NCBI RefSeq assembly: GCF_000143415.4
Contig: NW_003314355.1
Span: 205,410-269,409, forward strand
Reading direction: 5' to 3'
Source of the DNA: Selaginella moellendorffii
Lineage: Eukaryota > Plantae > Lycopodiophyta
Length of the DNA stretch: 64,000 bases
Below, piece after piece: positions 35,111-58,185 of this stretch; position 1 is the first letter of the stretch, and each line of letters begins with the position of its first letter. A program made the translations under genes and the position numbers. The notes beneath the pieces were generated by a model. That model searched no databases. It was not told the DNA's origin and saw only the letters and a list, made by a program, of their open reading frames with translations.

Positions 35111-36263
35111 TGTGAGACACAAAATCCCTAGGCCCCAAAGTGGAGCCGGAAAGGGTGCCACGTGGTAGTGGTTGAAGTGAGAGCCAAACGAGCGTAACAC
35201 GTTTGGACCAAAAGCTCCGACTTGAAAAGTCAAGAGCGGGAGTGGAACTCCCAACGAAGTGCTCGAGGAACGAGCACGAAGCGAGCAAAAAGCGAGGCTC
35301 CAAAAAGGGACCCAAAAGGACCAACACATGACACATGGAAGTGTCCGAGATGGACTCGAGTTGGAGTCCGAAGTGGAGTCCGAGATGGACCTGAGTTGGA
35401 GTCCGAAGTGGAGTCCGAGATGGACCCGAGATGGAGTCCGAGATGGAGTCCGAAATGGAGTCCGAGGTGGACCCAAGATGGACCCGAAATGGAGTCCGAG
35501 ATGGACCCGAGATGGAGTCCGAGATGGAGTCCGAGATGGAGTCCGAGGTGGACCCGAGATGGACCCGAAATGGAGTCCGAGATGGAGTCCGAGGTGGACC
35601 CGAGATGGACCCGAAATGGAGTCCGAGATGGAGTCCGAGATGGACTCGAGATGGAGTCCGAGATGGACCCGAGATGGAGTCCGAGATGGACCCGAGATGG
35701 AGTCCGAGATGAACCCGAGATGGAGTCCGAGATGGAGTCCGAGATGGAGTCCGAAGTCGAGACCAAGACCGGGACCGAGACCGAGACCGAGACCGAGACC
35801 GCGACCGAGACCGAGACGGAGACCGAGACCGAGATCGGGACCGAGAACGAGACCGAGGCCGAGCCCGAGTCCGAGTCTGAGTCTGAGTCCGAGTCCGAGT
35901 CCGAGTCCGAGTCCGAGTCCGAGTCCGAGTCCGAGTCCGAGTCCGAGTCCGAGTCCGAGTCCGAGTCCGAGTCCGAGTCCGAGTCCGAGTCCGAGTTCGA
36001 GTTCGAGTCTGAGAGGGTGAAAGCCCAAAGCGTTTGTCTCCCAGACCCTAGGGGGTTTGGTGAGCTCCAAAAGTATAGTAGGGGGAGGACTGCAGTGGAG
36101 CCAGTTTGGCCAGGAAAGGCCAGTTTGGCCCAAGAAGGCCGGACCCAGTGTTGGGTGATGAGCTGCCCACTGGGAAGTCCAAGACTAGAGTGAACACAGA
36201 CCAACAAGCGGGGTAGCTTGGTGAAGTGTTCAAGAGCCTGCTCTAGTTCCCCCGGGAGATCGA

Positions 36264-39200
36264 TGTAAGGAACCAACTCGCCGAGGTGTCGTAGGCTAAA
36301 GGAACCCCGAAAGCATGACCAAAATGACAAAGAGTTCATCGGATGGGACCAAGTCGAAGATCGAGTCCAAGACCGACTCTAGGACCGAGTTCGAGATAGA
36401 GTCCGGAATCGAGTCCGAGACCGACTCGGGGACCGAGTTCGAGTCCGAGTTCGAGACCGAGTTCGAGACGGAGTCCGAGATCCGAAATCGGGTCCGAGAC
36501 GGAGTCCGAGGTCGAGTCCGAGGTCGGGTCCGAGATCGGGTCCGAGATCGAGTCCGTGATCGAGTCCGAACCCGAATCCGAAGTCGGATCCGAAATCGGG
36601 TCCGAGATCGAGCCAGAGACTAAGTCCAAATACTAATACGGGTCAAGGGGTGAAAGCCCAAAGCGTGCGTCTCCCAGGGGGGGGGGGCTGCAGGGGGTTC
36701 CAAAAGTATAGTAGGGATAGTGAGGTCCAGGAACCAGTTTTGAAGGGACTCTCCAGTTGGGCTTCCAAACCGACTTGAGGTTGGGACTGGGACTAAGGGG
36801 CCTTGGGTGGGAGTGAGCATGGACTTGGCTGGTGCCGGAGGGGCCATCCAAGGAAGTGCTCAAGAGCAGCTCCCACTCCCGAAAGGGAAACCGATTGCGG
36901 TGCTCCCGGCTCATGTGGAGTGGTGCCCCACTTGAGTACCATGCGGCTCATTGGTCCTCGCCCTTCCTAGGGGCTTGGGCCTTCCTTCGGGACGGAAGTG
37001 GGGGGCGAGAGGTACCCATACCGGGCCGTTAGGCCACGGTGTTTCGCCCCGGCGTCCCGAAGCAAGTGTTGCACTCAAGACTTGGGATTTAGAGGGTCCC
37101 ATGATCAAGTCTTGTGGTACCAAGGGATGTTAGGAACCTGGAAGCTTGGTGTGCTTGGCTGCTTGTGCTTGCGGGGAGTGTAGCCGAACCTTAAGTCCAG
37201 TCTAACCCGGGGAGGGGGATTGGGAGTGATTTGGGAATCCGTGGAAGGATGGCTAACACTCCGTTGCTCGTGCAGTGAGTAGCTGAAACCAAGTAGGAGT
37301 TGGTACCATAGGCGAGAACCTTGGCAAGGGAACTTAGCAAAAGCCAAGGCAGTGTTGGACGGATAGACGAGGTAAGCTGGCAAATTAGAAAGGAAAAATT
37401 TGTGGCTTACAATTTGGTATCGGAGCCTTTATCTCAGTTCTAGCGAAGGATAGAGGCGGATTGCTGGGAGATGGCAAGGGCAGGGCGTAAGCGAACCCAG
37501 GCGGAGACGGAACCTCCGCCGGAGCTGGAGCCTCCGGTTGAACAAGAGGCTATGGATGAGGAATCCTTGCATGAGGAGGACTCCAGTGAGGAAACTTCCA
37601 AACAGGAGTCCGGTGGCGAGGTTCGGTCGTCCAAGGCTCGATTGGACGTGCTAGAAGGACAGTTGGCACAGACCAATGCCCTGCTGGAGACTCTCGTACG
37701 CAAGTTAAAGCGTGACGAGAAGCGGAAGAAAAAGCGAAAGACTGCGGATGCTGGCAGCGCAGAAGGTGCAGACCCTTCGGCAGGGATTGAGGCAAAACCA
37801 GACAAGGTCGAACAGACCGAAGTGGAATCAGTCCCTCAGGCAGTTCCCAAGTACAAACCAAAGCCCCCAACGGTGTTCAAGGGAGTGAACGACTATAAGG
37901 TTGTGGAGGATTGGTTTTACGATATGGAGGACTACTTCCGAGCGTTGCGGTTACCGAGCTCGGAGAAGGTCCCATGTGCAAAACCATACTTGGCAGATAA
38001 TGCCAAGTCTTGGTGGGGAACAACGGAGGCCAACGAAGGACCGGTGGCCACCTGGGACATGATGAAGGCGAGGATCCGCGCGACATACGTTCCTCCGAAT
38101 GCCACTCTGCATCTGAGAGATGAGCTGAGTAGGCTGAAGCAGACTGGAACCATCCAGGAATATGTGAATGGGTTCATGGCAAAGAGGATACTTGTCACGG
38201 ACATGGGGGATATGGATGCGTTCCATGCCTTTATATCAGGTTTGCAAACCTGGGCTCGCGGTGAGGTGATGCGCTGGAACCCGACCAACTACAAGGAAGC
38301 GTTGGATGCGGCCATCAAGGTGCATTTCAACGATAACCTGCGAAAGGGGAACACGACGGGGTCGGGATCCACGTTTCACAAAGGGGCCAAACCGAGGGGA
38401 ACATATAGCAAGGGGAAATTCAAGAAGAGTTTCTCTAAGAATGAGTCCTCGGGGTTCCGGAAAGGCAAATCCGGTGGCCAGCGAGCGAGTATGTGGGGAA
38501 GTCAAGCGAAAAAAGACAAACCCACGGATAAGAAGGTCAAGTCGTATAGCAGCGTGGGCAACAACGTATGCTACAACTGCGGCGAAGCGGGACACTTCTC
38601 AAGGGAATGTCCCTACCCGAAGAAGGCCAGAGCCAATATGGCCATCAAGTTGGGTGAAGTCCAAACTGAGGTATGTGATCCAGTCCCTAACTCAAAGTTA
38701 CTCATTACACGAGCAACTTTGGTAGAGAGTCGTTCGCGACATCTACTAGCCCTCCGAGGGAAGCTCGGAGGTAGCTTTGTTAAGATCCTTATTGACACGG
38801 GTGCTTCGGATAATTTTGTGGCTGCAGACATAGTCCGGCAAGCCGAACTAACGGTGCAGCGGCTAGGCGAACCAAGGACTATAGAGTTTGTTCAAGGTAG
38901 CCAAAGCACCGATGAGGTACTTCGACAAGCGAGAGTCGAAGTGGGGACATGGAAAGTGGACATGGATTTCACCGTCTTGGACATGGCGGGATTTGACGTG
39001 ATCTTCGGAATGGATTGGTTTAATCGGTTCGTGGTAGCCCTACATGGACAAGGTAGGAACCTTGTGGTATTGGCGAATGCCCAAGGAAGAAGATCTAGGG
39101 TGGAGGCCCAGGATCTAAAGGTAGGGCAAAGCAAGGCCAAAGAGTCATGCTTAAACCTGGTGTCCACGAGAGGACAACTCACTAAAGGAACTAAGGCAGC

Positions 39201-42200
39201 CTTTTTGTGCTTACTCTCGGTGAAGAGTGACAAAAAGACAAGAACGGAAGAAGTACCTTTAGTGATCCAGCAGGTGCTGGACCAATTCCAGGATACCATG
39301 CCAGAGGAGCTACCGGCGGGGTTGCCCCCCGCACGACCGATAGAACATAAGATTGAGCTGGTCGAGGGTGCTGAGGTGGTGGTTCGTCCACCCTATCGAT
39401 TGAACAAAAAAGAACTCAAGGAGCTCAAGAGCCAACTAGAGGAGTTGGTGGACAAAGGGTATGTTAGGTTGAGCAAGTCGCCGTATGGGGCGCCGGTGCT
39501 ATTTGTGAAAAAGAAAGATGGATCTATGCGCATGTGCATAGACTACCGGTTGCTCAACAAGTATACCAAGAAGAACAAGTACCCTTTGCCAAGGATCGAG
39601 GACCTGTTCGATAGGTTGGGAAAGGCAAAATACTTCTCGAGGATTGACCTAAGGTCAGGATACTACCAGATCAGGGTAGCTGAGGAAGATGTCGAGAAGA
39701 CAACCTGTCGAACGAGGTATGGGAGCTTTGAGTTTTTGGTGATGCCCTTTGGGCTGTGCAATGCGCCGGCAACGTTTTCGGCGTTGATGAACCACATCTT
39801 TGTACCCTATTTGGATCGCTTCGTGGTCGTCTATATTGACGACATCTTGATCTATAGCGAGACGCTAGAGGAGCATGCCGAACACTTGGCGAAGGTGTTT
39901 GAGAAACTAAGGGAACACAAACTGTATGCTAAAGAGAGCAAATGTGACTTTGCTCAACAAGAGGTAAAGTTTCTCGGGCATGTGGTGGGCCAGGACGGGC
40001 TCAAGGTGGACCCGGAGAAGGTCCAAGCGATCCAGGAATGGGAACGACCATCGAATGTACATGAGTTGAGGGCGTTCCTGGGGCTATGCAACTACTATCG
40101 AAAGTTTATCAGACACTATTCGAGAGTAGCCCTGCCCTTAACGGACCAAACAGGAAAAGGGAAGATGGTATGGACAGCGGAATGCGAGGCGGCATTCGTC
40201 CACCTCAAAGGGAAGTTGAGGAAGGCTCTGGTGTTGGCATTACCAGACTTTGGTAAGGACTTTGAGGTAGACACGGATGCTTCGGACTTTGCGTTGGGCG
40301 CAGTTTTGAAGCAAGACAACCATCCAGTAGCGTTCTTCTCGAAGAAGCTGGACAAGGCTCAACGGAAGTGGCCTGCCCACGAGAAGGAATTGTTTGCGGT
40401 GGTCAAGGCGCTCAAGGAGTGGCGACACTACCTTGGGAGACACTTCAAGGTTTACACGGACAATGTAGCAACGAAACACTTCTTGTCACAGCCCGACCTA
40501 AGGGGAAAACAAGGTCGGTGGGCCAATGCTTTGGCCGAGTTTGATTGCGAGATCCTGTACAAGCCTGGGAAGAGCAACATCGTGGCAGATGCGCTAAGTC
40601 GAAAAGCGAGCTTGAAGTTGGCGATATCTAGCGCGACAGCAACCTTTTGGGACGATGTGCGGACCGCATACGAGAGTGATGGTCTAGCACAAGAAGTGTT
40701 GCTGAGGAATCTGGAGGCGCGGGAAGCTCACCAGAGAGGTGAGCTGCCAACGGAAGAGAAAACGGGCTATGCGGAACGCAACGGACTCATATATTACAAG
40801 CAAACGAGGGTGTATGTTCCAGAAGGGGAACTAAGGAAAGTAGCCTTGGAAGAGTGTCATGACGGACCTCTTGCGGGACACGGCGGAGTGCCCAAGACGA
40901 TGGGCTTACTCAAAAGGAAGTATCACTGGCCGGATATGGCTAAGGACGTCCAAGACTACGTAAAGACATGTCCAACATGTCAGCAGGTCAAAGCCGTGAC
41001 GAAGGCTAGTGGGGGCTTGTTGCAAAGCATCCCCATTCCAGATCGTCCGTGGAAATGTCTCACGATGGACTTCATCACGGGACTACCCCCAAGCGAGGGG
41101 TTCGATGCGATATTCGTGGTGGTGGACCGATTTTCAAAGATGGCACATTTCATACCCACCACAACGGATGTGGATGCGGAAGGTGTGGCGAAGCTGTTCT
41201 TCGAACAAGTGGTTCGAGTGCGGGGAAGGCCGGAAGAGATTATCTCAGATCGAGATAAGATCTTCACCAGTAGGTTCTGGAGGACACTCCTAGAACAGTA
41301 TCGCACCAAGTTGAAATTCAGCACGGCCTATCACCCACAGACAGGTAATGGGTATTGAGTCAAGATTGAGGGCACTAACACTTCTTGACAGACGGACAAA
41401 CGGAAAGGGTGAATAGGCAGCTGGAGGATTATTTGCGATGCTATGTCTCGGGAGACCAGACCGACTGGGTAAGTCATCTGGGACTTGCGGAAATGTGTTA
41501 TAACAACTCACCACATTCGAGCATCGGGGTGAGTCCATGGGAAGTCATCAATGGGCGAGCTATTGAAGGTCCTGTGGAACTCGGCGTGGCCGAGTATCAT
41601 GGAGAGTTACCCGCAGTGGAGGCATTCACGGCGGAAAGACTCAACATTTGGAATCTAGTGAGGGATTCCTTGGAACGAGCTCAACAAAGGCAAACCAAGT
41701 ACGCGAACCTAAAGCGCCGGGATGTAGAGTTCCAAGCTGGGGAGAAGGTGTGGCTGAACACCAAGAACCTTAGGCTACCAAGTGGGATCAGCCGAAAGTT
41801 GACCCAAAGGTAAAAATGCATGTATTCCTGTAAATGAATTGATCTTGAGTTCCTTAAGCAGGTTCGCGGGGCCTTACGAGATTGAGGCACGAATCGGTAA
41901 AGTGGCTTACCGACTCCGACTTCCTCGAGAGATGGGGAAGATGCACCCAGTGTTCCATGTGAACTTACTCAAGCCGTACTTTGAGGATCCGCTTCGCAAG
42001 GACCAAGTAAGACCTTTACCTGAGGTTATCCAAGGGGAAGAGGAATACGAAGTCGAGGCCATCCTCAATGCACGCAAGAGCAAGCGACAAGGACGCGAGG
42101 GGAGAGAGTTCCATGTGAAGTGGAAAGGATTTCCACACTGCGAAGCAACATGGGAACCGGAGGAGAACCTAGCGAACGCGCGAGATCTAGTGGAGGAATT

Positions 42201-43796
42201 TCTGCAAGGCAGAACTCTATGTACTTATGCAAAGTTCAATTAAAAATATATCAATTTGCAAAGTTGAGCAAGTGGCATATGTTGGGACCCGAAGGCGCGC
42301 CGAAGGTGAGCTAATTAGCATGGGTTAGCTAGGTCGACCAGGCATAGGGAGCTACGCCCGACTCCCTGCGGGGATGTCGAAACCGTAGACGTATTCTACG
42401 GAGGTTGGGTTCGAGTCCCAACCCCCTAGTAAAGCAAGGCTGGGTTCAAGTCCCGACCCTATACTAGGACGTGGTGAGGGGAGGAGTATAGGGACACCTA
42501 TATTCCGTTGTCATGGGCTCTTGGCCGGGGAGGCTAACTTAGGCACACCGCTAAGTGGGGGGATGCCCCCGGAGACATGGTCAACAAGTCGTAGGATAAA
42601 ATGAGACGTTCGATGTGGGCATCGAACTTCTTCTATGGGTGGTGGAGTTGTAAGGAACCAACTCGCCGAGGTGTCGTAGGCTAAAGGAACCCCGAAAGCA
42701 TGACCAAAATGACAAAGAGTTCATCGGATGGGACCAAGTCGAAGATCGAGTCCAAGACCGACTCTAGGACCGAGTTCGAGATAGAGTCCGGAATCGAGTC
42801 CGAGACCGACTCGGGGACCGAGTTCGAGTCCGAGTTCGAGACCGAGTTCGAGACGGAGTCCGAGATCCGAAATCGGGTCCGAGACGGAGTCCGAGGTCGA
42901 GTCCGAGGTCGGGTCCGAGATCGGGTCCGAGATCGAGTCCGTGATCGAGTCCGAACCCGAATCCGAAGTCGGATCCGAAATCGGGTCCGAGATCGAGCCA
43001 GAGACTAAGTCCAAATACTAATACGGGTCAAGGGGTGAAAGCCCAAAGCGTGCGTCTCCCAGGGGGGGGGGGCTGCAGGGGGTTCCAAAAGTATAGTAGG
43101 GATAGTGAGGTCCAGGAACCAGTTTTGAAGGGACTCTCCAGTTGGGCTTCCAAACCGACTTGAGGTTGGGACTGGGACTAAGGGGCCTTGGGTGGGAGTG
43201 AGCATGGACTTGGCTGGTGCCGGAGGGGCCATCCAAGGAAGTGCTCAAGAGCAGCTCCCACTCCCGAAAGGGAAACCGATTGCAGTGCTCCCGGCTCATG
43301 TGGAGTGGTGCCCCACTTGAGTACCATGCGGCTCATTGGTCCTCGCCCTTCCTAGGGGCTTGGGCCTTCCTTCGGGACGGAAGTGGGGGGCGAGAGGTAC
43401 CCATACCGGGCCGTTAGGCCACGGTGTTTCGCCCCGGCGTCCCGAAGCAAGTGTTGCACTCAAGACTTGGGATTTAGAGGGTCCCATGATCAAGTCTTGT
43501 GGTACCAAGGGATGTTAGGAACCTGGAAGCTTGGTGTGCTTGGCTGCTTGTGCTTGCGGGGAGTGTAGCCGAACCTTAAGTCCAGTCTAACCCGGGGAGG
43601 GGGATTGGGAGTGATTTGGGAATCCGTGGAAGGATGGCTAACACTCCGTTGCTCGTGCAGTGAGTAGCTGAAACCAAGTAGGAGTTGGTACCATAGGCGA
43701 GAACCTTGGCAAGGGAACTTAGCAAAAGCCAAGGCAGTGTTGGACGGATAGACGAGGTAAGCTGGCAAATTGGAAAGGAAAAATTTGTGGCTTACA
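36264..43796 (+). mobile_element. Full-length young Ty3/gypsy chromovirus (family B)
   Basis: LTRs 36264-37411 and 42649-43796 (1,148 bp; I spotted only about 2 substitutions); TSD ATCGA (36259-36263, 43797-43801); PBS 37415-37426; PPT to 42648. Confidence 0.98.
37471..42243 (+). CDS. Gag-Pol polyprotein (Gag, CCHC, protease, RT, RNase H, integrase, chromodomain); exons 37471-41344, 41392-41809, 41862-42243
   Basis: [33 protein letters not shown] zinc site, [13 protein letters not shown]; splicing restores HPQTDGQTER and KLTQRFAGPY; chromodomain YEVEAIL...VKWKGF...TWEPEENL. Confidence 0.93.
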
Positions 43797-46077
43797 ATCG
43801 ACTGGCTGATGCTCCCAGTCCAAGTGTGGGTGGCACTACCTACTTGGATACCTGGTGTGGCTCAACGGAACCCGCTCTAAGCCCATGGCTAGAGCACCCA
43901 AGGGCAGACGGCGAGGAGAGTACCCAAGTGGCTCGCGTAAGGCCACGGTGTTCCGAAATGTTGTCCCAAAGGCCCAGACTGTGGAAAGGAAGAGGAGCAG
44001 TCCTCTGGGGTAGTGACCAAGGACACAGTCGTGTGGTGAGGAAGTCCCAGAGGACCGTGGGACTTAGTGGTCGGGCCTATGGGTCTCAATCCAGTGGCAG
44101 TGTTGGCAAACACGGCCAGGGGCAGGAAGGGACTTAGTGGGGACTGACAGAGGGATATTGGGGAAGGCTATTCCCCTTGTCGGTGGGCATCCTAAGGATG
44201 CTAAGGAGTGGATCTGAGATGACCACTCACGGATGGTTTGCCTAGTCTTGGAGAGCCAAGACGGTGATGCAAGTGGTATTGGACTACCAGTGTGGCAAAG
44301 GTGATTGGGCATGGCCTTAGCGTAATGGGCTGCTATATCAGTGGTACCTTCAAGTGTCGGTCATGGGATCGGACACGTGGACCACTTGGACCAAGTGCAA
44401 ATGTTGAGTGGCATGGATGCCATTCTCGGGGCTAGCAAGTCCCAAGTCCTGGATTGGACTTATGGAGGTTGTGAATAAGACTCCTCCAAGTGGTCAGAGG
44501 TGTGGTTAAGTGACTAAAGTAGAATGGAAAATTTAGTCACTTACAGATGAGTACGGCAGGAGGAGCTGATGGTGTGGAGACACCAAATGTGCCAAGGTGT
44601 GATACCTTGAGGCTATGTTGGTGGGTTCATGAGAACCCCTTGCCAAAGGAATCCCAATGGAAATGGGAATGGCATAGCCTAAGCTGCAGAGCATGCAGTT
44701 GGAGTGTGGTGACCCAGATAATGGAGGTGTGAAAGCACCAAACAATGAGTTGTAGGACTTGACAACTATGAGGCAACTAAGCAAGAGGTGCAAAATAATT
44801 GGTTGAACGGGTAGAAGGTAGCTACCCAAGACTTCTTAATAGCATAGGGAAGTCAGATACACCCTTACGGGGGATAAGTTGCTTGTGTTGCGATATAGAA
44901 AGACAATGTCATAAAAGGAAATACTCATTGTCAAGAAAGCCATCATTGGGACACCCGAACACTCTAGAACACCAGAAGGTGGTGTTTGATGTCGCGAGGG
45001 CAATGGATAAAGCCCAAGGGACTAAGTCCCTAGCGAATGATGTATAGAAGGTGCTATCCAAATGTCCAAGGTTGCGAAGACAGGAGAGGACTGTCTACCC
45101 GAGTTGGACAAAGCCAAAAATGGAATTTTGGCAAGGCTAGTGATGGGCATGTAAAGGCCCATAAGCAACAATGTAATCCCAGTGTGTGGGATTATAAGGT
45201 GAGCATACCCGGATTGAGGAACCACTCCTTAGGCTATTGGGTAGGTTCATCCCTAAGAATACTTGCTAAGGCATGATAGAAAGTGCAAAGCTATCCTCCT
45301 GGTCTGGAGGAGAATAACCAAAGGAAACATATGGGGCCAAAAGGCAAGTAGTATTGGGATGGAATTGAACCATAGAAATCGAAGGGCATAACCAAGGTTG
45401 GTTATGCCAGCTGGGAGTGGAGAATCAAGTGGGGGCTCGAGGGTGTTGCCGCTAGCAACCGTGATGCCATGGAGAGTCTAAAATATGGAAATGTTAGACT
45501 ATGTGGCAATTGGAAAGCTTGCAAAAAGGGAGGCCTTAGCAAGCTAAGTGATAGAGTTCCTTCAAGGTTCCCAAAGACGATTCTAGGCAGCTTAGTACCT
45601 AGAAAGGCCAAGTGTAAATGGTTCATAGAACGCGCGAAATCAAAGTGGCGCAGCAGAAGCGTGGTCTTGAAGGTTAGGGAAGTAGTTCCCGAGTGTTCAA
45701 AGAGAGGGCTTTGAACGAAAGTTGATGGTTAGGGACTTCCATGCTTATGCATGAACCATGTTACGGTGGCCGGATGACTTGCTAAGTGAGATTGGCAAGT
45801 TGGGGGGAACAAATACCCTAGTTGAAGGTGCTAACTTCAAAAAGGGTGGCCCATGGGGCCAAGCATGGAGGAGCCCATGCATGATCACAGATATGTCAAG
45901 TGAGAGGACTTGGCAGTGTGGGGGAACTAGGTTCCTAAGCTGTGATCTGTAGCGCGCTTTAAAAATAAGTTGGTGCACCGGCGTGGGGAGTCACGCCAGG
46001 CATCCTGGGTGATGCCGTCCGTAGATGCATATACGGAGGTTGGGTTCGAGTCCCGACCCTCTAGTGCTTGGGTTCGA

Positions 46078-46412
46078 TGAAACGTGTATGTACATTCCCC
46101 AATGTCCCGTAGGGACTAATACAAAAATTGGGCATGCTGCCCAAAGCTCATGCTACCTAGTGGTGATCTCCCTCATCTAAAGTGAGACTAGGCCTGCAGT
46201 AGAAGCGGCTGCGGTTGTCTCCGTCGTATCTCGTCCAGATCCACGTCCCCCCTTCGTGCTGACCGCAAGATCGACTCCGGGGGGCGAACCTCCTTGTGAT
46301 CTCCTCTACCAAAACATGGCAGCCATGCTTTTTGCCACTCCTCGAGCCTCTCGAGCTTCCCCCTGTCCCGGAGGATAGCATGGTGAAGCCGTATTGCCGC
46401 CAGTGTAAGTCT
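46078..46412 (-). mobile_element. 5'-truncated LINE 3' fragment (335 bp)
   Basis: 19-bp TSD CTCTAGTGCTTGGGTTCGA (46059-46077, 46413-46431); terminus similar to the insert at 48786. Confidence 0.85.
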
Positions 46413-48626
46413 CTCTAGTGCTTGGGTTCGAGTCCCAAATCACTAGTGCGTGGTGATGGTTTGGAATATGAGGACACTCATATTTCGGTGGTCATGGACT
46501 CTCAGTGGGGAGACTGGTTTGGGCACACCGCCAAGCGAGGGATGCCTCGGAGTCGTGATGCACGGTTAGATTGCTTAGTGTGAAAGCTCAGCATATCTAA
46601 CTTGAACGCTTTGGTGCAAGTGGCACCAAAGACGTGGTGAGTGAGATGGGGACACCTAATCTCAGTTGCTATAGACCCTTGGCCGGAAGGGCTGGCTTGG
46701 GCGCACCGCCAAGTGTGGGGGATGCCCCCGGGGTCGTAGTTAACAAGTTAAAGGTCTGGGAGACCTAGTACCTATTGGCAAACCTGTTAAGGTGCCGAGG
46801 TGAGATCACTAGGTGATTTTGTGGCTAAATAAGGACAAGGTCCTTGTTTGGGTTAAGGAATAAAGTTCCTAGTTCAAAGTGTTGATTTGAACTATTGATG
46901 ATGGTGTGGCTTGGTCAAGGTGACCAAGTGGTAAAAGCACCATAGGGAAATGAGCTATGTCATTGCGATGGCATAGTGTGTCCAAGGAAAGTAGTCTCTA
47001 AAGAGACCCATGAGAGGGTCACAAAGTTGGGCCAAGGATAGAGCCCACAACAGAAGATGCTAAAAGAGACTTACTAGGGGCGAACACCCTAGTCTTGGCA
47101 AAGCAGAGCCTTTGCTATGGAATCAAAAGAATACCTCAAGGAGGGAGGTAGAGATTCGATGTTGCTTGGTGCAACAATCAACGGATAGGAGCAAAAGATG
47201 AGTGGCCAAGATAGGGCCGTGGAATCCCTTGGAAGGAATCCAAGTGACAAAGTTAGGCGAGGAACACTAATGTGTTGGACGCTAACAAATTGCGGGAAAG
47301 GAAGTGTGTTTCCAAGGATGAATTCCGAATTGCTCCGATTTGGCGAAAGTGGAAGCTCCAAGGGAGGGAGCGGTAAGGTAGCCAAATGATAGAGCGATGG
47401 ACAACCCTAGCACAAAGTGTGATAAATGGAACTTAGTGCCCAAGGTGGCACGAAATAGAAGAGAGGATGATGGTGCCCTCAAGTAATGAACTTCCTAAGA
47501 TAGGGAAGTGGAGTTGCACATTCTGTGCAACACAAAGTGTTGGAGACACCTAGGAAATTGACTTCCAAAAGTCAAAAGAGTAAAAGTTCCAAGGTGCAAA
47601 CATTCAATAGATGGAAATTGAGACTACTCGAGGAGTAGTGGGATTGACTTAGAGAAGGGTCTCTAAGAGGTTTAGCGAGAACTAAACCAATAAAAGGAGA
47701 GAACCACTACATGTGGTCCAATCAGTCTCTAAGTTGGAGAGACTACCATCCTTAGAGGATAGGCAAGGCATGGTGAGCCTTTGGTGTCAAACTATTGAGG
47801 CATATGCAAAAGGCATGGTGAGCCTTCAATGTCAAACCCTTGACAAATATTGGCTAGGTGCCAAGGATGGAAATGGTAACATATGCGAGTGTTACTTTAC
47901 AAAATGGTTTACCGTTCGATAAGGACATCGAACTTCGTCTATGGGTGGTGGAGTTGTGAGACACAAAATCCCTAGGCCCCAAAGTGGAGCCGGAAAGGGT
48001 GCCACGTGGTAGTGGCTGAAGCGAGAGCCAAACGAGCGTAACACGTTTGGACCAAAAGCTCCGACTTGAAAAGTCAAGAGTGGGAGTGGAACTCCCAACA
48101 AAGTGCTCGAGGAACGAGCACGAAGCGAGCAAAAAGCGAGGCTCCAAAAAAAGGCCCAAAAGGACCAACACATGACACGTGGAAGTGTCCGAGATGGACT
48201 CGAGTTGGAGTCCGAAGTGGAGTCCGAGATGGACCCGAGTTGGAGTCCGAAGTGGAGTCCGAGATGGACCCGAGATGGAGTCCGAGATGGAGTCCGAAAT
48301 GGAGTCCGAGGTGGACCCGAGATGGACCCGAAATGGAGTCCGAGATGGACCCGAGATGGAGTCCGAGATGGAGTCCGAGATGGAGTCCGAGGTGGACCTG
48401 AGATGGACCCGAAATGGAGTCCGAGATGGAGTCCGAGATGGAGTCCGAGGTGGACCCGAGATGGACCCGAAATGGAGTCCGAGATGGAGTCCGAGATGGA
48501 CCCGAGATGGAGTCCGAGATGGACCCGAGATGGAGTCCGAGATGGACCCGAGATGGAGTCCGAGATGGAGTCCGAGATGGAGTCCGAAGTCGAGACCAAG
48601 ACCGGGACCGAGACCAAGACCGAGAA

Positions 48627-48673
<47 letters not shown>

Positions 48674-48785
48674 TCGGGACCGAGAACGAGACCAAGGCCA
48701 AGGCCGAGACCGAGACCGAGCCCGAGCCCGAGTCCGAGTCCGAATCCGAGTCCGAGTCCGAGTCCGAGTCCGAGTTCGAGTTCGA

Positions 48786-49254
48786 TGCAACGTGTATGTA
48801 CATTTCTCCAAGTCCCTTAGGGACTGATACAAAAAACAAGAATCCCTTAGCGCTGTTCACTCACCTACGCTGTCCTGCAATTCTCCACCTAATAGTGATC
48901 ACTGCCCTCCAATCGTGGCTGCTGTGGTCGTCGCCTCCGCAGTGCATCTAGTGCTAGATCGCCACGTCGAGCCTCCTTTGTTACCGTGTCCAAAGGTCTC
49001 CATTTCCACTTGACCTCCCCCTCGTGTTCAGTTCCGTAGCACGGAATCCATAGTCGTCGCCAAGCTGTGAGTGCCTCCCTGTTTTTCCCATGCTCCTGGA
49101 GCAGCGTATCCCTCAAGCGGATAGCAGCCAGTGTGAGCCTCCACCAATTCGCCATGATCACTGAAATCCGAGCGCACTGCCCTTCGAATTGGTTGCGGTT
49201 ACGAGCCTCCCAGAGTGCCTGTACCCCGGAAGCCCGCCATACCTCCCATCTCGC
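48786..49254 (-). mobile_element. 5'-truncated LINE 3' fragment (469 bp)
   Basis: 16-bp TSD CCGAGTTCGAGTTCGA (48770-48785, 49255-49270); encodes ALWEARNRNQFEG...WKWRP, similar to the ORF2 C-terminus VWKARCNRIFND...WMWTP. Confidence 0.9.
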
Positions 49255-50272
49255 CCGAGTTCGAGTTCGAGTCTGAGAGGGTGAAAGCCCAAAGCGTTCG
49301 TCTCCCAGACCCTGGGGGGTTTGGTGAGCTCCAAAAGTATAGTAGGGGGAGGACTGCAGTGGAGCCAGTTTGGCCTGGAAAGGCCAGTTTGGCCCAGGAA
49401 GGCTGGACCCAGTGTTGGGTGATGAGCTGCCCACTGGGAAGTCCAAGACTAGAGTGAACACAGACCGACAAGCGGGGTAGCTTGGTGAAGTGTTCAAGAG
49501 CCGGCTCTAGTTCCCCCGGGAGATCGACTGGCCGATGCTCCCAGTCCAAGTGTGGGTGGCACTACCTACTTGGATACCTGGTGTGGCTCAACGGAACCCG
49601 CTCTAAGCCCATGGCTAGAGCACCCAAGGGCAGAAGGCGAGGAGAGTACCCAGGTGGCTCGCGTAAGGCCACGGTGTTCTGAAATGTTGTCCCAAAGGCC
49701 CAGACTGTGGAAAGGAAGAGGAGCAGTCCTCTGGGGTAGTGACCAAGGACACAGTCGTGTGGTGAGGAAGTCCCAGAGGACCGTGGGACTTAGTGGTCGG
49801 GCCTGTGGGTCTCGATCCAGTGGCAGTGTTGGCAAACACGGCCAGGGGCAGAAAGGGACTTAGTGGGGACTGACAGAGGGATATTGGGGAAGGCTATTCC
49901 CCTTGTCGGTGGGCATCCTAAGGATGCTAAGGAGTGGATCTGAGATGACCACTCACGGATGGTTTGCCTAGTCTTGGGGAGCCAAGACGGTGATGCAAGT
50001 GGTATTGGACTACCAGTGTGGCAAAGGTGATTGGGCATGGCCTTAGCGTAACGGGCTGCTATGTCAGTGGTACCTTCGAGTGTCGGTCATGGGATCGGAC
50101 ACGTGGAGCACTTGGACCAAGTGCAAATGTTGAGTGGCATGGATGCCATTCTCGGGGCTAGCAAGTCCCAAGTCCTGGATTGGACTTATGGAGGTTGTGA
50201 ATGAGACTCCTCCAAGTGGTCAGAGGTGTGGTTAAGTGACTAAAGTAGAATGGAAAATTTAGTCACTTACAG

Positions 50273-52522
50273 ATGAGTACGGCAGGAGGAAGAGCCAGAG
50301 GTGTGCAGCTGCCGGAGGTATTGGATCCAGAAGAGGCGCTGACAGGAGAAGCTCCGGTAGTCAATGTGGAGAACAAAGGAAAAGAGGACTCGAGCGAGGA
50401 AGAGGGAGCACCCCTCACGAGAGCTCCTAGAAGAAACACCACCAACGAGTCACCGGGGACGGGGGAGGAAAATACACTGGGAAGGACGGAAAAAGAAGCC
50501 AGCGGGAAGGAAGCAGGGGTAGGGTCCCCGTCCGGGATCAAGCGAAGGGTCAAGACGTGCTGCCCGCTGGACAAGGGCCCCCCGTGTTTCAAGGCAATCC
50601 GGGAAGCCAATGCGCGTAAAGAGCAAGAAGCCAAACGTCTGGCAGAAGAGGAAGCAAAGCGGATACTGGAAGAAGAAGCTGAAAGGGAAAAGGCTACCAA
50701 AGAAAGGCAGGAACAGGAAGCCCGACAGGAAAGACCGATTGAAATGGAACAAATGGCACGAACATATGAAGAACCGGTCGGACAGGAATTCAATGGCAAA
50801 ATGAGGGATGACAAGGGCAAGGGGAAGTGGGAAGAAGCGAGACAATGGGAAGCATCGTCATCAAGAGGGAACCGGGAAGAGCTCGCGCCAGAAGTGGTGA
50901 TATCCCCAGACGGGAAGCAAGAGCCGGGAACAGGGTACCCGAAAGTACTACCGCAGTACTCGAAAATGTCTGTCTGCCCGGATGCTCCCATAGTCCCGTT
51001 CGGGCCACCACCCATGAAGATCGAGGAGATAATGCCACCAAGGAAGCCCACGAGAATGCCACATGGGCCAGCAAGTGATGTGCTAGAGGTAGACCCGGAA
51101 GAATTCATGGAGGAGTTAAACAAGCTGCAAGCCAGACGAGCGGAAGAAACCGTGCACGTGATAGTGGAGGGAGCAGTCCCGGCAGGTTTTGTAGTGTCAG
51201 ATTGGGTGTGCGCAGCGCTGGCGTACCACGACATGTTGGTCACGGTTTTAGCAGAAGATGTGAAGGACCTGGGGGAAAAGTGCTATAATGTAGTCATCAA
51301 GGATGAGAGAGCTCGGCACAAGCTACTGCGAGTGGATGCGTATGCACAGTTGGACTTTCAGCTCTTCTTCAGAGCATACCACAACAACTTCACGCCCCAG
51401 AAAAAAAGGATGCTACTCCCGCCATCCGTGATCGTGAACTTTGAGCTACAGGGAATGGACGTGGCACTGGCAGAAGACAAGATTCTGGCAGCAATACTGA
51501 GGCAGTTTGCTACGTTCATAAGGATGGAAGGAACGCCAGTGGGAGACAGAGTCACGGTCAAAGTCAGGATTCCGAAAGAAGTACGCATCCCCTTCGAGAT
51601 AGAACTCAAGCCAGGGAAGGGGGAAGTGCCAAGAAGGATTCGAGTTATGCTGCTACCGAACCCGAGCGTGTGCATCATCTGCCGGCGAACAGGACACATT
51701 GGGAAACACTGTTTGGCTGGAGGAGCAAGCATGGGGGGAATGCCGGAAACAGGGGAAGACCGACAAAAAGCAAACAGTGGCTCGGAAGGCAAGAAACGAG
51801 GAGCAAGAGGGGAAAGGGAAACAATAGAGAAAGCAGCCTCCAGTGGAGAAAGCAAGAAGCCTCAAACCAAAGGACAGAAGGAGGAGGGACAAGGGGAGCA
51901 ATCAACAGCAGCCAACCAGGAAAAAGGACAATCGGGGACATCACGAGGAAAAGAATGGAGGCCAACAGGAAGACTTTTTGAAGGACAAGCTGTGGGGGAG
52001 GCAAAGGGACCTGACACAGAAGTAGAGACTGTCCAGGATAAAGGAGAACTACCACCTCAGCAGGCAACACAGAGGGCGTCGGGGCCAGTAGAACAAGAAC
52101 AACAACAATCACGTTCAAGATCAGGAAGAACGGAAGACTTTGCAAGAGGAAACTGCCCGCCAGGGTTCACCCCACCGAGAAGAGCAGTATGTGAAATAGA
52201 GCTCTATGTCAGTGGAATGAACCCTCCCAAGCTCCTGGGGGAATGGATCGACAACAGAGTTGGATACGCCCCGCCGGCAATTTTGATCTCGGCCGGACAA
52301 GACATAGGCCGGACCCTGGAGGACATTCTGGCCTACAACTTCAACTGGAACCTGCAGAGGTTTTCGATTCGAGAAGACAATTGCGTGGAGCAAGCACCGA
52401 ACTTGTTCAGGTTCCGAGGAACGGCGAGAATCCCGTTTGCATGGCCACTCCGACCAATGGGCCCATACCATTGGGTGGAGAGACAGCGTCTTGGCAGCAC
52501 CCGAGGATTCAGAAATGGTTAA
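50273..52522 (+). CDS. LINE ORF1 (coiled-coil region, CCHC zinc knuckle), 3' part
   Basis: 749-aa open frame with CIICRRTGHIGKHC; overlaps the ORF2 ATG by 8 nt. Confidence 0.85.
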   Translation: MSTAGGRARGVQLPEVLDPEEALTGEAPVVNVENKGKEDSSEEEGAPLTRAPRRNTTNESPGTGEENTLGRTEKEASGKEAGVGSPSGIKRRVKTCCPLDKGPPCFKAIREANARKEQEAKRLAEEEAKRILEEEAEREKATKERQEQEARQERPIEMEQMARTYEEPVGQEFNGKMRDDKGKGKWEEARQWEASSSRGNREELAPEVVISPDGKQEPGTGYPKVLPQYSKMSVCPDAPIVPFGPPPMKIEEIMPPRKPTRMPHGPASDVLEVDPEEFMEELNKLQARRAEETVHVIVEGAVPAGFVVSDWVCAALAYHDMLVTVLAEDVKDLGEKCYNVVIKDERARHKLLRVDAYAQLDFQLFFRAYHNNFTPQKKRMLLPPSVIVNFELQGMDVALAEDKILAAILRQFATFIRMEGTPVGDRVTVKVRIPKEVRIPFEIELKPGKGEVPRRIRVMLLPNPSVCIICRRTGHIGKHCLAGGASMGGMPETGEDRQKANSGSEGKKRGARGERETIEKAASSGESKKPQTKGQKEEGQGEQSTAANQEKGQSGTSRGKEWRPTGRLFEGQAVGEAKGPDTEVETVQDKGELPPQQATQRASGPVEQEQQQSRSRSGRTEDFARGNCPPGFTPPRRAVCEIELYVSGMNPPKLLGEWIDNRVGYAPPAILISAGQDIGRTLEDILAYNFNWNLQRFSIREDNCVEQAPNLFRFRGTARIPFAWPLRPMGPYHWVERQRLGSTRGFRNG

Positions 52523-55500
52523 CGTCAACATGAGAACATGGAACGTGGGAGGCCTGAAGAAGGAGAGATCAGCGCTGAATAACAAAAAGACGAAGTTTAG
52601 ACAGTACCTTAGACAAATAGAAGGTGTGACTCAATGTTTTGATTTCCTGTGTGTGCAAGAGCATAGGCTCTCAAGTATGGACCTGGTTTATAAGTTTACG
52701 AAAGGGAAATATTTCTGGAATCCGGCAGTATCATGTAGTGGAGGCACATTAATAGTGGTAAAAGGCCAGTGGGAATCCCTGGTCGAAGAACATGCAATAC
52801 TGGTACCGGGTAGAGCACAGTGCGTCCAGTTTAAGATAGGAGATATGCTAGTGGGCCTCCTGAATGTGTACGCACCGGCAGGAAGCTCATCTGAAAGAGC
52901 AGATTTCTGGAATGAACTGGTACACCGAATACCAGCACAACCCTCAACATGGATGGTCATGGGAGATTTCAACTTTGTGGAAGAAGTGCTAGTCAAAGAC
53001 GGGGGAGAAATGAGAGATAAAAGGACAAGCAGGGAAAGAGCAATGTGGGCACAACTAGTGCTAGCGCTGGGGCTAGAGGATACGTACAACATCCCAGGTT
53101 TTGTACAACACCAACCAAGGTTCACGTGGCAAGAGCACCAGCAACAGGGAATTCAACGAAGACTGGACCGTTTTTATGTATCATCCGAACTGTGTCGGAA
53201 TAGTGGCAAATTAGACATAGCAACGGGATACAGAGACTTCTCGGATCATAACTCGGTGTCATTGATGCTCCCCATCCTAAAGAGGTGGGGAAAAAAGAGG
53301 CCCGCTCCGGTATCTCGGAAAAACTTTGAGGACGGAAAGTTGAATGACTATATAAAAGAAAAATGGAACCAGCAAGAAGAAGGAGACCTGCACAAGTTCA
53401 CAATCAAGATAGCCAATGAAATCCGGAACAAGAGAAGAAAAGTTTTCAAAAAAGTGCAAGCAATAAGAAGGAATATTGAAGCTATTAAGAGATTGATCAG
53501 GTTGGACCCGCTGGATGCGTCACTGAGAACCCAGCTCGCAAGAACCAAAGCCCAGCTTTTCACCCTGGAAGCGGAAAAAATGGAGGCGTTTATAAGGTCG
53601 GGGCACCTCAAATGGCATAACAGTGAAAATGCTCTAAACAAAGAGTTTTATAAGTCCATAAAAGCAAGAGTTACGTCCCCGCCAATGTTCGGGCTCAAGG
53701 ATGACCAAGGCATGATGCACACGAGCCTACAGGAGATGCACAGGATGGCTGAGACATACTACCAAGAACTGTTTAGAGCAGAACCGTGGACAGAAGAAAG
53801 GAAGATGGCCATGGAGGAAGTTCTTCAGTCGGTGCCACAGAAGGTAGATGAATCCGGAGCACGGGCCCTGTGCAAAAACTTCACACTGGAAGAGCTAGAG
53901 GATGCAGTTAGAGACTTGAATGACGACAAGATGCCCGGAGAAGATGGGATGCCGCCAGCATACTATAAAGCAAATTGGGAATGGTTGGGGCCAGTAGTGT
54001 TGGACACATGGAAAGAGGTGATGAGAACGGGACAATGGCCCTCAGGAGCCATAGATGGAATAATTGCGCTCATCCCCAAAAAAGGGGGGGATGCATCACT
54101 AATCAAGAACTGGAGACCAATATCGATGCTAAATACACTATACAAGATAGTAGCCAAGGCGTTAGCCAAGAGGTTACGACCGTTATTGCCAGAGACGATA
54201 CACGACACCCAGAATGGATTTGTGGAAGGAAGACAACTAGTGGACAACATCCTGACAGTGCTGCTCACACAAGAACAAGTCAAGGACCAAGGATTAGAGA
54301 TGGCAATAATACTTCTGGATTACGAGAAGGCATATGACAGAGTAGACTGGGAGTTTCTGCAAGCGACGATGAGGAAGATCGGCATTCCAGAAAAGTTTAT
54401 AGGATGGTCGGCCACCTTATACCAAGGCGCATCAAGCAAGGTCACAATAAATGGGACAGTGGGGAACACGATCAAGCTGCAACGGTCAGTAAGACAAGGG
54501 TGTCCACTAGCCCCGTTTCTATTCCTATTCATAGCCAATGCTTTAGCACACTATTTGGCAAGGGCGGATGGGCCGGAAGGGCTGGTACTGCCCGGGTGCA
54601 GAGACTCATTGCAAGACCTGGCAAGGACAGCAGAAAGGCATTTGAAATCCAGTGCCTTCGCAGATGACACAGGAATCATCACGTCAGGTTCCCCGGAGAA
54701 CATGAGCAAGGTCAAGAAGGATTTGGACTTCTTCAACCTGGCAGCTGGCTCAAGAATAAACTGGGGAAAATCGGTAGGAATATGGCTACCAAGCTCTGAC
54801 CCGCCAAACTGGGGGAGTGAGTGGGAGTTTAAGTGGCTGAAACAAGGAGAAACAACAAGGTACTTGGGGTTCCAGATAGGCCGGGCATACGACCCCCTCC
54901 CGCAGAATCAAAAAGCGGTCGAAAAGCTCAGAGATCAACTGAAATTTTGGGCGTCACGAAAGCTGTCCTTCTCGGCAAGATGTGTAGTGGCGAATAATAT
55001 AGTGCTAGGGGCAATCTGGTTTCTGGCGGCATCATGGAACTTGGATAAGAAAATGTTAAGAGAAATGAACAAGCTCATCAGGACATATGTATGGAAGGGA
55101 CAGGCAACAGTATCACGAGGAGGGGCAAAGGTTGGATGGAGCTCGGTTACAAGAGCAAAACAGGAGGGGGGGATAAACATAATAGATATAGAGGAACAAT
55201 GCAAGGCACTGCTATTCAAGATCTTTCACCGAATGAACATGCCCGGAAACCAACCATGGAAACTCCTACTACGCCACCAACTGCTCAAAGTCATACCAGA
55301 CAGACTAGAACACACGAGGCAAAACTGGGAAAAAGATGAAAGGTGGCTGTTCACGGAAGGCACGCTGAAAATGCCAAGACCAAATACTTTCTCTGGGAAA
55401 CTATTCAGATTGTGGAAAGAATTCAAGAGCAAGATGGAAAAAAGAAAACCAACAAACACCTACGAGCTGGACCGACAACCAATATTTCTAAATAAGCTAT

Positions 55501-56936
55501 TTCAATATAAGGGGAAATGTTTGGGAGAAACAGAGGACAGAGGAATAGACAAAGTATGCCGGGACCTCCACAGTGCTGGGATGAGAACATTCGTAGAAGC
55601 TGACTCGATGATAAAAGTGGGGGACACAGAAATGAACAGAGATAGACTAAAGGCTTTCTACGGGCTGGAAATCTCAGCACACCGGCTGAAAAAGTTTGAA
55701 ACAGCCTTGGAAGATGCGCAAGGGAACTGCAAACAGAGCATTAGGGAAGCCAGAGAAACGACACCAGCATGGTGGATAACTGAGGGAAAAGTGGTATATA
55801 CGGCAACTAAAGACCAGGCGAAATGTTTTGTCTTCGAGGTCGGGGTGGCTGGTAGACTGTTACCATACAAGGTGCCCAAGGAGAGCTCACGACCGGACAT
55901 GACAAGAGCAGAGCCAATACGAGTCATACGGATAGACAAGAAAACAGCATCAATAGACCCGATGGTAACAGAGGGCCAGGAAGCTAGGATGTACTGGTTC
56001 AGGCAACAAAAATTAAGCGAGCTGGCATGGGATCTGGTGGAATGGAATTGGCGGGGAAGGCAAAAGGAAGAATTTTTTGCCTACGAAACAAGATTGGGGA
56101 GAAGGCTCATTCGGCCGCGCAGTGACTCACTACTGGTATCAAGGATGAAACGAGCCAACATACAGGACAAGATACAACAGGCGATATTGAAAGAATTATG
56201 GAAAGGACAGTGGGCAGCAAAAACAAGATACTTCATGTGGTTGACAATGCAAGACCGGCTGCCATCAAAGTGGAACATACACCTCTCGGACCAAGCTTGT
56301 GACAAATGTGGAGCGAGGGAGACACAAAGGCACATACTATGGGAATGCAAAAGCGCACAGGACGTGTGGAGAAGCACGTGCTGGATGCTGCAACAGCACT
56401 CCCAAAGACAAGTGTGCCTCACATATGAAGCGGCAGTGTGGGGCGAAGCTGCCGCAGGAATGCGAAATGGAACAGACTCTTGGAAATGGGCAGCAATAGA
56501 AGAAGGGGCACCGAGGTTTGATCAGCTCAACACAACTCGAACAGACACAGAAGGAATCCCAACAAAGATAATGGACCTATTGAGAGGAATTACAATGTGG
56601 GAAGTATGGAAAGCCCGGTGCAACAGGATCTTTAACGATAGGGAAGAAGGACCGAGGGTGGTAGTGGCACGGGTGTGGTCTAGAATGATAACTGCAGCAG
56701 CATCCCGGGTCCTACAACTGGAAAAGAGAGGAGGAAGAAATGGTCCAAAAAAAGCAAAAAAAGAAGCGCAGATCTGGCATTTTTTGTGGAAGCAAGGGGA
56801 GGCAGGTACTCGGGAATGGATGTGGACACCGCCGGATGAATGGTTCCAGGTGACGCATCTAGGAAGACCTTCGGGCGCCAGTTCACGAGCAACCCCCCTT
56901 TCCGTTGGTACTTCCATTGTAGGCTCCTCTAGATAA
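52515..56936 (+). CDS. LINE ORF2, intact (APE endonuclease, RT, C-terminal zinc finger), 1,473 aa
   Basis: Same motifs as copy 1, no stops; ATG at 52515 (MVNVNMRTWNVGG). Confidence 0.95.
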   Translation: MVNVNMRTWNVGGLKKERSALNNKKTKFRQYLRQIEGVTQCFDFLCVQEHRLSSMDLVYKFTKGKYFWNPAVSCSGGTLIVVKGQWESLVEEHAILVPGRAQCVQFKIGDMLVGLLNVYAPAGSSSERADFWNELVHRIPAQPSTWMVMGDFNFVEEVLVKDGGEMRDKRTSRERAMWAQLVLALGLEDTYNIPGFVQHQPRFTWQEHQQQGIQRRLDRFYVSSELCRNSGKLDIATGYRDFSDHNSVSLMLPILKRWGKKRPAPVSRKNFEDGKLNDYIKEKWNQQEEGDLHKFTIKIANEIRNKRRKVFKKVQAIRRNIEAIKRLIRLDPLDASLRTQLARTKAQLFTLEAEKMEAFIRSGHLKWHNSENALNKEFYKSIKARVTSPPMFGLKDDQGMMHTSLQEMHRMAETYYQELFRAEPWTEERKMAMEEVLQSVPQKVDESGARALCKNFTLEELEDAVRDLNDDKMPGEDGMPPAYYKANWEWLGPVVLDTWKEVMRTGQWPSGAIDGIIALIPKKGGDASLIKNWRPISMLNTLYKIVAKALAKRLRPLLPETIHDTQNGFVEGRQLVDNILTVLLTQEQVKDQGLEMAIILLDYEKAYDRVDWEFLQATMRKIGIPEKFIGWSATLYQGASSKVTINGTVGNTIKLQRSVRQGCPLAPFLFLFIANALAHYLARADGPEGLVLPGCRDSLQDLARTAERHLKSSAFADDTGIITSGSPENMSKVKKDLDFFNLAAGSRINWGKSVGIWLPSSDPPNWGSEWEFKWLKQGETTRYLGFQIGRAYDPLPQNQKAVEKLRDQLKFWASRKLSFSARCVVANNIVLGAIWFLAASWNLDKKMLREMNKLIRTYVWKGQATVSRGGAKVGWSSVTRAKQEGGINIIDIEEQCKALLFKIFHRMNMPGNQPWKLLLRHQLLKVIPDRLEHTRQNWEKDERWLFTEGTLKMPRPNTFSGKLFRLWKEFKSKMEKRKPTNTYELDRQPIFLNKLFQYKGKCLGETEDRGIDKVCRDLHSAGMRTFVEADSMIKVGDTEMNRDRLKAFYGLEISAHRLKKFETALEDAQGNCKQSIREARETTPAWWITEGKVVYTATKDQAKCFVFEVGVAGRLLPYKVPKESSRPDMTRAEPIRVIRIDKKTASIDPMVTEGQEARMYWFRQQKLSELAWDLVEWNWRGRQKEEFFAYETRLGRRLIRPRSDSLLVSRMKRANIQDKIQQAILKELWKGQWAAKTRYFMWLTMQDRLPSKWNIHLSDQACDKCGARETQRHILWECKSAQDVWRSTCWMLQQHSQRQVCLTYEAAVWGEAAAGMRNGTDSWKWAAIEEGAPRFDQLNTTRTDTEGIPTKIMDLLRGITMWEVWKARCNRIFNDREEGPRVVVARVWSRMITAAASRVLQLEKRGGRNGPKKAKKEAQIWHFLWKQGEAGTREWMWTPPDEWFQVTHLGRPSGASSRATPLSVGTSIVGSSR

Positions 56937-57017
56937 AGGCTCTTTGCTGGTTTTGTGCCCAACGAAACCACGCCCAGTCTTTTTGGTTTTTTACTGGAAA
57001 ATAAAAGGCCCCGTTTA

Positions 57018-57773
<756 letters not shown>

Positions 57774-58185
57774 ATATATATGATATATGTGAGGGCCAAG
57801 TGTACGGCTACGATGCCGTATACTAATATTAGCGTAGTGGGATTTTGGTAGCCGTCGGATTGGTTTCAATCCGAACCACTTGCTCCTGTATATAAGCTAG
57901 GGTTTTTGGGCTAATTGATATGCACATTTCTGTATTCCCTTTCCATATTCCATGCACTCACATTGGTGGAGGTGAGGGGCACCTTTGATTGTTGCTTGGA
58001 TTTGGGATTTCGGTTTAGATCTAGCTTTTGCATTGTCTAGATCTAGCTTTTTCCATTTCCTTTCTTTTGTTCTTTCCTTTCAGGATTTTGGTTTAGATCT
58101 AGCTTTTTGCATTGTCTAGATCTACCATTTCTTTCCAGCTTTTTGTCATTTCTCTTCTTTTGCTCTTTCTTTTTCATTCATCTTC

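Follow-up and report, generated by a model that had tools for sequence, protein, structure and literature searches.

The stretch analysed here (the window) comprises 64,000 nucleotides of the Selaginella moellendorffii contig NW_003314355.1, positions 205,410 to 269,409. It contains many copies of an abundant repeat whose period is about 4.9 kb, and this repeat is the host of two 5'-truncated fragments of long interspersed nuclear elements (LINEs), named insert 1 and insert 2. Their assignment to a sequence-specific LINE of the 'stringent' type, with a conserved 3' terminus independent of poly(A), is well supported. Insert boundaries were read directly from window letters 45500-49800, and the inserts, their target-site duplications (TSD1 and TSD2) and the empty paralogues of both sites are as follows; a caret in a motif marks a nick.

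46059-46077, plus strand: left copy of TSD1, CTCTAGTGCTTGGGTTCGA, 19 bp; its 3' end is the primer end of the nick GTTCGA^GTC
46078-46412, minus strand: insert 1, a 5'-truncated LINE fragment of 335 bp, flanked by TSD1 and missing from the empty sites
46413-46431, plus strand: right copy of TSD1, 19 bp, followed by GTCCCAAATCACTAG, the 3' half of a T-arm-like hairpin
48770-48785, plus strand: left copy of TSD2, CCGAGTTCGAGTTCGA, 16 bp, located where the host's (GAGTCC)n microsatellite ends in its GAGTTC variant
48786-49253, minus strand: insert 2, a 5'-truncated LINE fragment of 468 bp, flanked by TSD2
49254-49269, plus strand: right copy of TSD2, 16 bp, followed by GTCTGAGAGGG
24973-24991, plus strand: empty paralogue of site 1, with one TSD1 copy and then GTCCCAAATC; read-through 24944-25031
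15790-15808: second empty paralogue of site 1, with one TSD1 copy and then GTCCCAAATC; read-through 15761-15848
35991-36006, plus strand: empty paralogue of site 2, with one TSD2 copy and then GTCTGAGAGGG; read-through 35959-36047

An earlier reading made from the sequence alone had described two independent inserts starting at 46078 and 48786, with duplications of 19 and 16 bp and no poly(A). All of this was borne out: both duplications are perfect, they enclose inserts that are absent from paralogous empty sites, and no A-run lies at the junction of insert and target in either case. The plus strand reads TGAAACGTGTATGTACATT from 46078, straight after TSD1, and TGCAACGTGTATGTACATT from 48786, straight after TSD2, so that both inserts begin with TG(A/C)AACGTGTATGTACATT immediately behind GTTCGA. 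This 3' end is common to the two fragments, and the points of 5' truncation differ.

Contigs of four public runs (X1, X5, X6 and X7) were compared with window positions 45900-49400 (3,501 letters). In the empty-site contigs the joint 46058->46413 skips 354 bp, the 335 bp of insert 1 plus one 19-bp duplication, with 19 letters shared; it was found in three contigs of X1 and in one each of X5, X6 and X7. The insert boundaries are therefore fixed by three empty paralogues within the window together with empty-site contigs in four runs. Run X1, which covers this interval best, yielded about 20 contig variants over the body of insert 1 and 10-14 over that of insert 2, which shows that both insert families are multicopy; the summed depth of the insert contigs in this run was two orders of magnitude lower than that of the host repeat. 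The other three runs, labelled as three other organisms, contained contigs of low depth that match the host repeat at about 98-99% identity, in the empty-site form, and had zero depth across both LINE inserts. Contamination, mislabelling and close relatives are indistinguishable as sources of these contigs.

On the minus strand, each fragment consists of an open frame, a stop codon and an untranslated region (UTR) of about 105-110 nt, the frame being the tail of the second open reading frame (ORF2) of the element:

46191-46412, minus strand: ORF2 tail codons of insert 1 (74 amino acids); stop codon 46188-46190; 3' UTR 46078-46187
48892-49251, minus strand: ORF2 tail codons of insert 2 (120 amino acids); stop codon 48889-48891; 3' UTR 48786-48888
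46078-46129, minus strand: 3'-terminal RNA module of insert 1, 52 nt, with the hairpin GUCCC-UAC-GGGAC at 46104-46116 and an invariant 16-mer at 46081-46096, followed by UCA-3'
48812-48824 and 48789-48804, minus strand: the corresponding hairpin and invariant 16-mer of insert 2

The two frames proved homologous (summed tblastx E 7e-19), with 49% amino-acid identity over 74 residues and stops a few codons apart. The sequence-only reading had given the inserts different bodies and similar 3' ends; the similarity of the 3' ends stands, and the bodies are not unrelated, since they encode the same ORF2 C-terminal tail. A codon-wise count between the tails gave proportions of nonsynonymous and synonymous differences (pN and pS) of 0.35 and 0.73, and corrected rates (dN and dS) of 0.47 and about 2.5, the latter being saturated; dN/dS was about 0.2. 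Identity at codon positions 1, 2 and 3 was 61%, 66% and 39%, respectively. The pN/pS values and the codon-position identities indicate that the split was old and that both lineages remained protein-coding as they diverged.

The tail begins with a W-x-W...ARN..F motif. It is collinear with residues 1388-1467 of the intact 1499-residue ORF2 encoded by another LINE in the window, an ORF2 with endonuclease, reverse transcriptase (RT) and zf-RVT domains, at a weak 25% identity; this similarity was insignificant (BLASTP E 0.4; hhalign probability 11%). A further weak match (tblastn E 0.005) linked the tail to the very C-terminal end of an L1-like ORF2, full in length, on a metagenome contig. No Pfam match to the tails was found, even at E = 10. 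A protein word search with the 120-residue tail and a phmmer search with the tail against 1.84 billion representative proteins each returned 0 matches, and an Atlas look-up of the tail gave sub-threshold leads only. The DNA pattern of the 3' module, searched as two patterns in metagenome contigs and also in viral contigs and prokaryotic genome contigs, likewise had 0 matches. Because the tail matches are combined with TSDs, a common 3' end and differing 5' truncation of an ORF2-coding body, the inserts were identified as dead-on-arrival LINE copies. The ORF2 tail, which is the part of the protein that these copies retain, suggests that the parent was probably an L1-type element with an apurinic/apyrimidinic (AP)-like endonuclease.

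The terminal 52 nt of the two inserts were identical at 45 positions (87%), and the UTR upstream could barely be aligned. This module is made up of the hairpin (A)GUCCC-N3-GGGAC(U), a linker of 7 nt with four differing positions, and the invariant 16-mer followed by U/G-C-A-3'. The hairpin noted earlier as GTCCC-N3-GGGAC is present in both inserts and was predicted by folding in each. Within the window, the 16-mer AACGTGTATGTACATT was not found beyond the two inserts, with 3 mismatches permitted. Set against a pS of 0.73 in the adjoining tails, the terminus is conserved beyond the neutral level, and it carries no poly(A). LINE 3' ends of this 'stringent' kind are known from a Chlamydomonas L1 and from one L1 lineage of maize and sorghum (PMC3472496). 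Conservation of this kind suggests that the module may be recognised by the RT of the element. No convincing complementarity of the RNA 3' end to the nicked DNA end was seen by eye.

The targets of the two inserts had been noted as a B-box-like hairpin and a GAGTTC variant of a microsatellite, and both descriptions hold. Site 1 is the loop of the T-arm-like hairpin CTAGTG-C-TTGGG-TTCGAGT-CCCAA-AT-CACTAG, the second of two such hairpins in tandem, and site 2 is the last GAGTTC unit, which closes a (GAGTCC)n microsatellite. As the sense strand of both LINEs is the minus strand, the primer for RT would be the plus strand ending in ...GTTCGA-3'OH, which places the first nick at GTTCGA^GTC at both sites, in agreement with the common orientation and register recognised from the sequence. 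The two sites share G-6 to C+3; beyond these nine positions, agreement is confined to scattered positions.

Among the 128,000 strand-positions of the window, the pre-insertion sites comprise 11 GTTCGAGTC 9-mers and 52 GTTCGA hexamers. From these counts, a second, random insertion would fall in the same register with a probability of about 9e-5 if the 9-mer is considered and about 4e-4 if the hexamer is. Site 2 has a GTTCGA^GTT directly before the nicked motif that was left unused, and eleven GTTCGA^G sites in the window with other bases at +2 and +3 are empty. Cleavage of the second strand, at distances of 16 and 19 bp, took place at sites with no sequence in common. In two events, independent copies from two diverged lineages have thus entered a single motif at one and the same nucleotide, with the orientation also shared. 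The specificity looks inherited, since it is common to two lineages whose synonymous sites are saturated.

The shared motif corresponds to part of a tRNA T-arm: in tRNA numbering, GTTCGA^GTC is G53-T54-T55-C56-G57-A58^N59-N60-C61, which places the nick between 58 and 59. Seven of the tRNA positions G53-C61 are near-universal. The T-arm/box B consensus GGTTCGANTCC is matched at 11/11 positions by site 1 and at 9/11 by site 2. The microsatellite variant used at site 2 has no more than 9 bp in common with the hairpin of site 1, so the full tRNA-like context is not required, and the common part of the used targets is narrowed to GTTCGA^GTC.

The explanation that we consider likely is that the inserts are two dead-on-arrival copies of anciently diverged sister lineages, belonging to one non-LTR group whose members nick GTTCGA^GTC. 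In the proposed mechanism, the endonuclease of the element would recognise the motif and nick one strand at 5'-GTTCGA^GTC-3', which corresponds to T-arm/box B positions 53-61. The freed ...GTTCGA-3'OH would then directly prime RT on the 3' terminus of the LINE RNA, which has no poly(A) and would be recognised through its terminal module, the hairpin plus 16-nt box, in the manner of the 'stringent' type. The second strand would be cut 16-19 bp away with no sequence preference, giving rise to the TSDs and leaving the element antisense to the motif. The target would be the short motif wherever it is present, here a T-arm-like hairpin and a GAGTTC variant, and not necessarily a tRNA gene.

Several observations weigh against this explanation. 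Nine full 9-mer sites in the window, among them exact paralogues of the two that were used, contain no insert, which indicates that insertion is rare or that the 9-mer is not sufficient. The evidence consists of two insertion events in one window, and the RT and endonuclease of the insert family are absent from its fragments, which encode ORF2 tails of 74-120 residues. The hairpin stems of the 3' module are identical in both copies and so provide no support from covariation; the z-scores from folding, -0.3 to -1.7, are weak.

The sequence-only reading had taken bona fide tRNA genes, with their T-loop GGTTCGA, to be the normal home of the family, and the motif copies in an abundant repeat to be accidental decoys. 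The identity of the core with tRNA positions G53-C61 and the complete fit of site 1 to box B speak for this reading, as do the tRNA-gene-specific LINEs NeSL-1_TV, LIN15_SM and LIN25_SM known from animals and protists (PMC4640811). Neither target is a tRNA, however: ARAGORN detected no tRNA genes in the window, and the host hairpin region had no Rfam match, even at E = 10. Both targets are consequently tRNA-like in the T-arm core only. Neither copy interrupts a bona fide tRNA gene, and site 2 is a plain microsatellite variant. A home in tRNA genes is accordingly rather unlikely.

Less probable still is a loose preference of the nick for a short motif, for instance TTCGA/G, similar to that of mammalian L1 for TTTT/AA, which would make this a dispersed family and the 9-bp identity partly a matter of luck. 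With two events, most matching sites empty, and a microsatellite unit that dictates the bases around TCGA at site 2, some of the agreement could arise in this way. Given TCGA^G at both sites, however, four more positions coincide (about 1 in 256), the GTTCGA^GTT next to site 2 and the eleven other GTTCGA^G sites were passed over, and the register is common to two lineages with saturated synonymous divergence.

The motif is box B, and the elements could in principle be tethered to a box-B-bound factor of RNA polymerase III (Pol III), such as a TFIIIC-like protein, as are Dictyostelium TRE or yeast Ty3, with no sequence recognition by the endonuclease. Tethered elements insert at a distance from the gene and not at one nucleotide inside box B; site 2, moreover, is a microsatellite that lacks a tRNA-like context and matches at 9/11 positions, so tethering appears very improbable. 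Coincidence between two unrelated random insertions has the small sample and nothing else in its favour, and can be practically dismissed given the probability of about 1e-4 to 4e-4 for the common register, the same orientation, and the relatedness of the elements.

In behaviour and proposed mechanism, the inserts match the target-specific LINEs with AP-like endonucleases of the Tx1 and R1 clades. These are known from animals, where they insert into other transposons, into microsatellites and into genes for small RNAs (PMC4640811, PMC4494074). Insertion at one site within a repeated sequence is what the spikemoss inserts have in common with the Tx1 clade (Tx1L, Tx1-Mar, Keno, Kibi, Koshi, Mutsu and Dewa), whose targets include transposons and microsatellites, just as the motif here lies within another repeat and in a microsatellite variant. 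Members of that clade are L1-group LINEs with AP-like endonucleases; of the spikemoss family, the window contains ORF2 tails and no RT or endonuclease. The Tx1 clade is described from animals only in the cited literature, and its target motifs and 3' modules are unlike the T-arm core and the 52-nt module. Dewa reportedly targets tRNA arrays, an observation attributed to Kojima and Fujiwara in 2004.

A defined site in tRNA-type sequence is also used by NeSL-1_TV, LIN15_SM and LIN25_SM, which are specific for tRNA-Pro, tRNA-Arg and tRNA-Glu, respectively; these elements of Trichomonas and planaria carry a restriction-like endonuclease and target one tRNA species each (PMC4640811). The spikemoss inserts differ from them in using a generic T-arm core, in their L1-type-like tail, and in the lack of a real tRNA gene in the window. 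The stringent L1 elements of plants and algae (the maize LINE1-1_ZM lineage and Chlamydomonas L1-1_CR) are not reported to be site-specific and most end in poly(A) repeats, whereas the inserts have no A-run and their 3' end directly abuts the target. R1/R2-type LINEs of ribosomal DNA (rDNA), and the 25S-associated LINE of the window described below, resemble the inserts in precise antisense insertion into structural-RNA-type sequence, without poly(A) and with a defined 3' end. These elements have a different target, and the insignificant tail similarity gives no support to the clade of the inserts with the rDNA LINE that the sequence-only reading had proposed.

A broader reading, which we regard as tentative, is that a land-plant L1-type clade evolved sequence-specific endonucleases independently of Tx1/R1, with a T-arm/box B branch and a sister branch homing to one site of 25S rDNA, both with poly(A)-less stringent 3' ends. 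The T-arm/box B branch of such a clade could potentially reach every Pol III box-B-bearing sequence, tRNA genes included. No report of a site-specific LINE in a plant was found in the literature searched. If the interpretation is true, a lineage in plants whose nick falls at a single nucleotide of the T-arm core would represent an independent origin of homing for the AP-like endonuclease type and would provide a natural protein recognising a 9-13-bp motif. It would also explain LINEs nested locally in spikemoss repeats.

The rDNA-associated LINE is an L1-type element with two copies in the window, at 50273-57033 and 27579-33316. The copy at 50273-57033 has an intact ORF1 (749 amino acids) upstream of the 1499-residue ORF2 mentioned above, and its 3' end, ...AACAAAGTCG, directly adjoins a fragment of 25S rRNA in antisense orientation at 57034-57945 (Rfam large-subunit positions 1497-2388). 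The copy at 27579-33316 lies outside rDNA, yet its end, ...GTCGGACTAGA, still includes 7 nt that match the rRNA target exactly; these derive either from a master copy in rDNA, by read-through, or from homology to the target that is part of the 3' end. A protein search with the C-terminal region of this LINE's ORF2 returned 0 matches, and exact-protein look-ups of the window's open reading frames found none on record. TSD1 starts with CTCTAGT (46059-46065), and this heptamer is also found at the end of the rDNA LINE's 25S target (57034-57046; sense CTTGACTCTAGTC^), which is probably a coincidence.

A search with the RT domain identified one S. moellendorffii gene model, at a locus on GL377632.1. 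Positions 4277-12445 of this locus contain a relative of the rDNA LINE, with 44-57% amino-acid identity and a homologous 3' UTR ending in ...GACAAAG; the element has no rDNA flank and is split by a 4-kb insertion at 5868-9901. The 3' module and the tail of the insert family were not found at this locus. A TCGAAC located 45 nt past the stop codon of its LINE was considered as a third junction and rejected, as the motif lies inside a 3' UTR that aligns with that of the rDNA LINE, and the end of the element, ...ACAAAG, comes about 50 nt later. Two metagenome loci in ENA (L002, which supplied the tblastn match to the tail, and L003) carry distant L1-like elements without the 3' module.

The T-arm-like module of the host repeat, ACGGAGGTTGGGTTCGAGTCCC(A/G)ACCC, occurs once more at 42395-42430, in the post-pol region of a long terminal repeat (LTR) retrotransposon at 36615-43798, and is therefore common to the two. 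This retrotransposon is young, with LTRs that are 99.75% identical, and its family is also present at the GL377632.1 locus at 83-89% identity. The host repeat shares with it the module and about 110 bp nearby, and may be a non-autonomous derivative of it. The ATG of the rDNA LINE's ORF1 lies 2 nt past the ...CACTTACA end inside the host repeat (44541-44564 compared with 50267-50290), and the first 19 nt past that end are common to the host repeat and the LINE; the repeat and the 5' end of the LINE may be related, or the repeat may supply the upstream region of the LINE.

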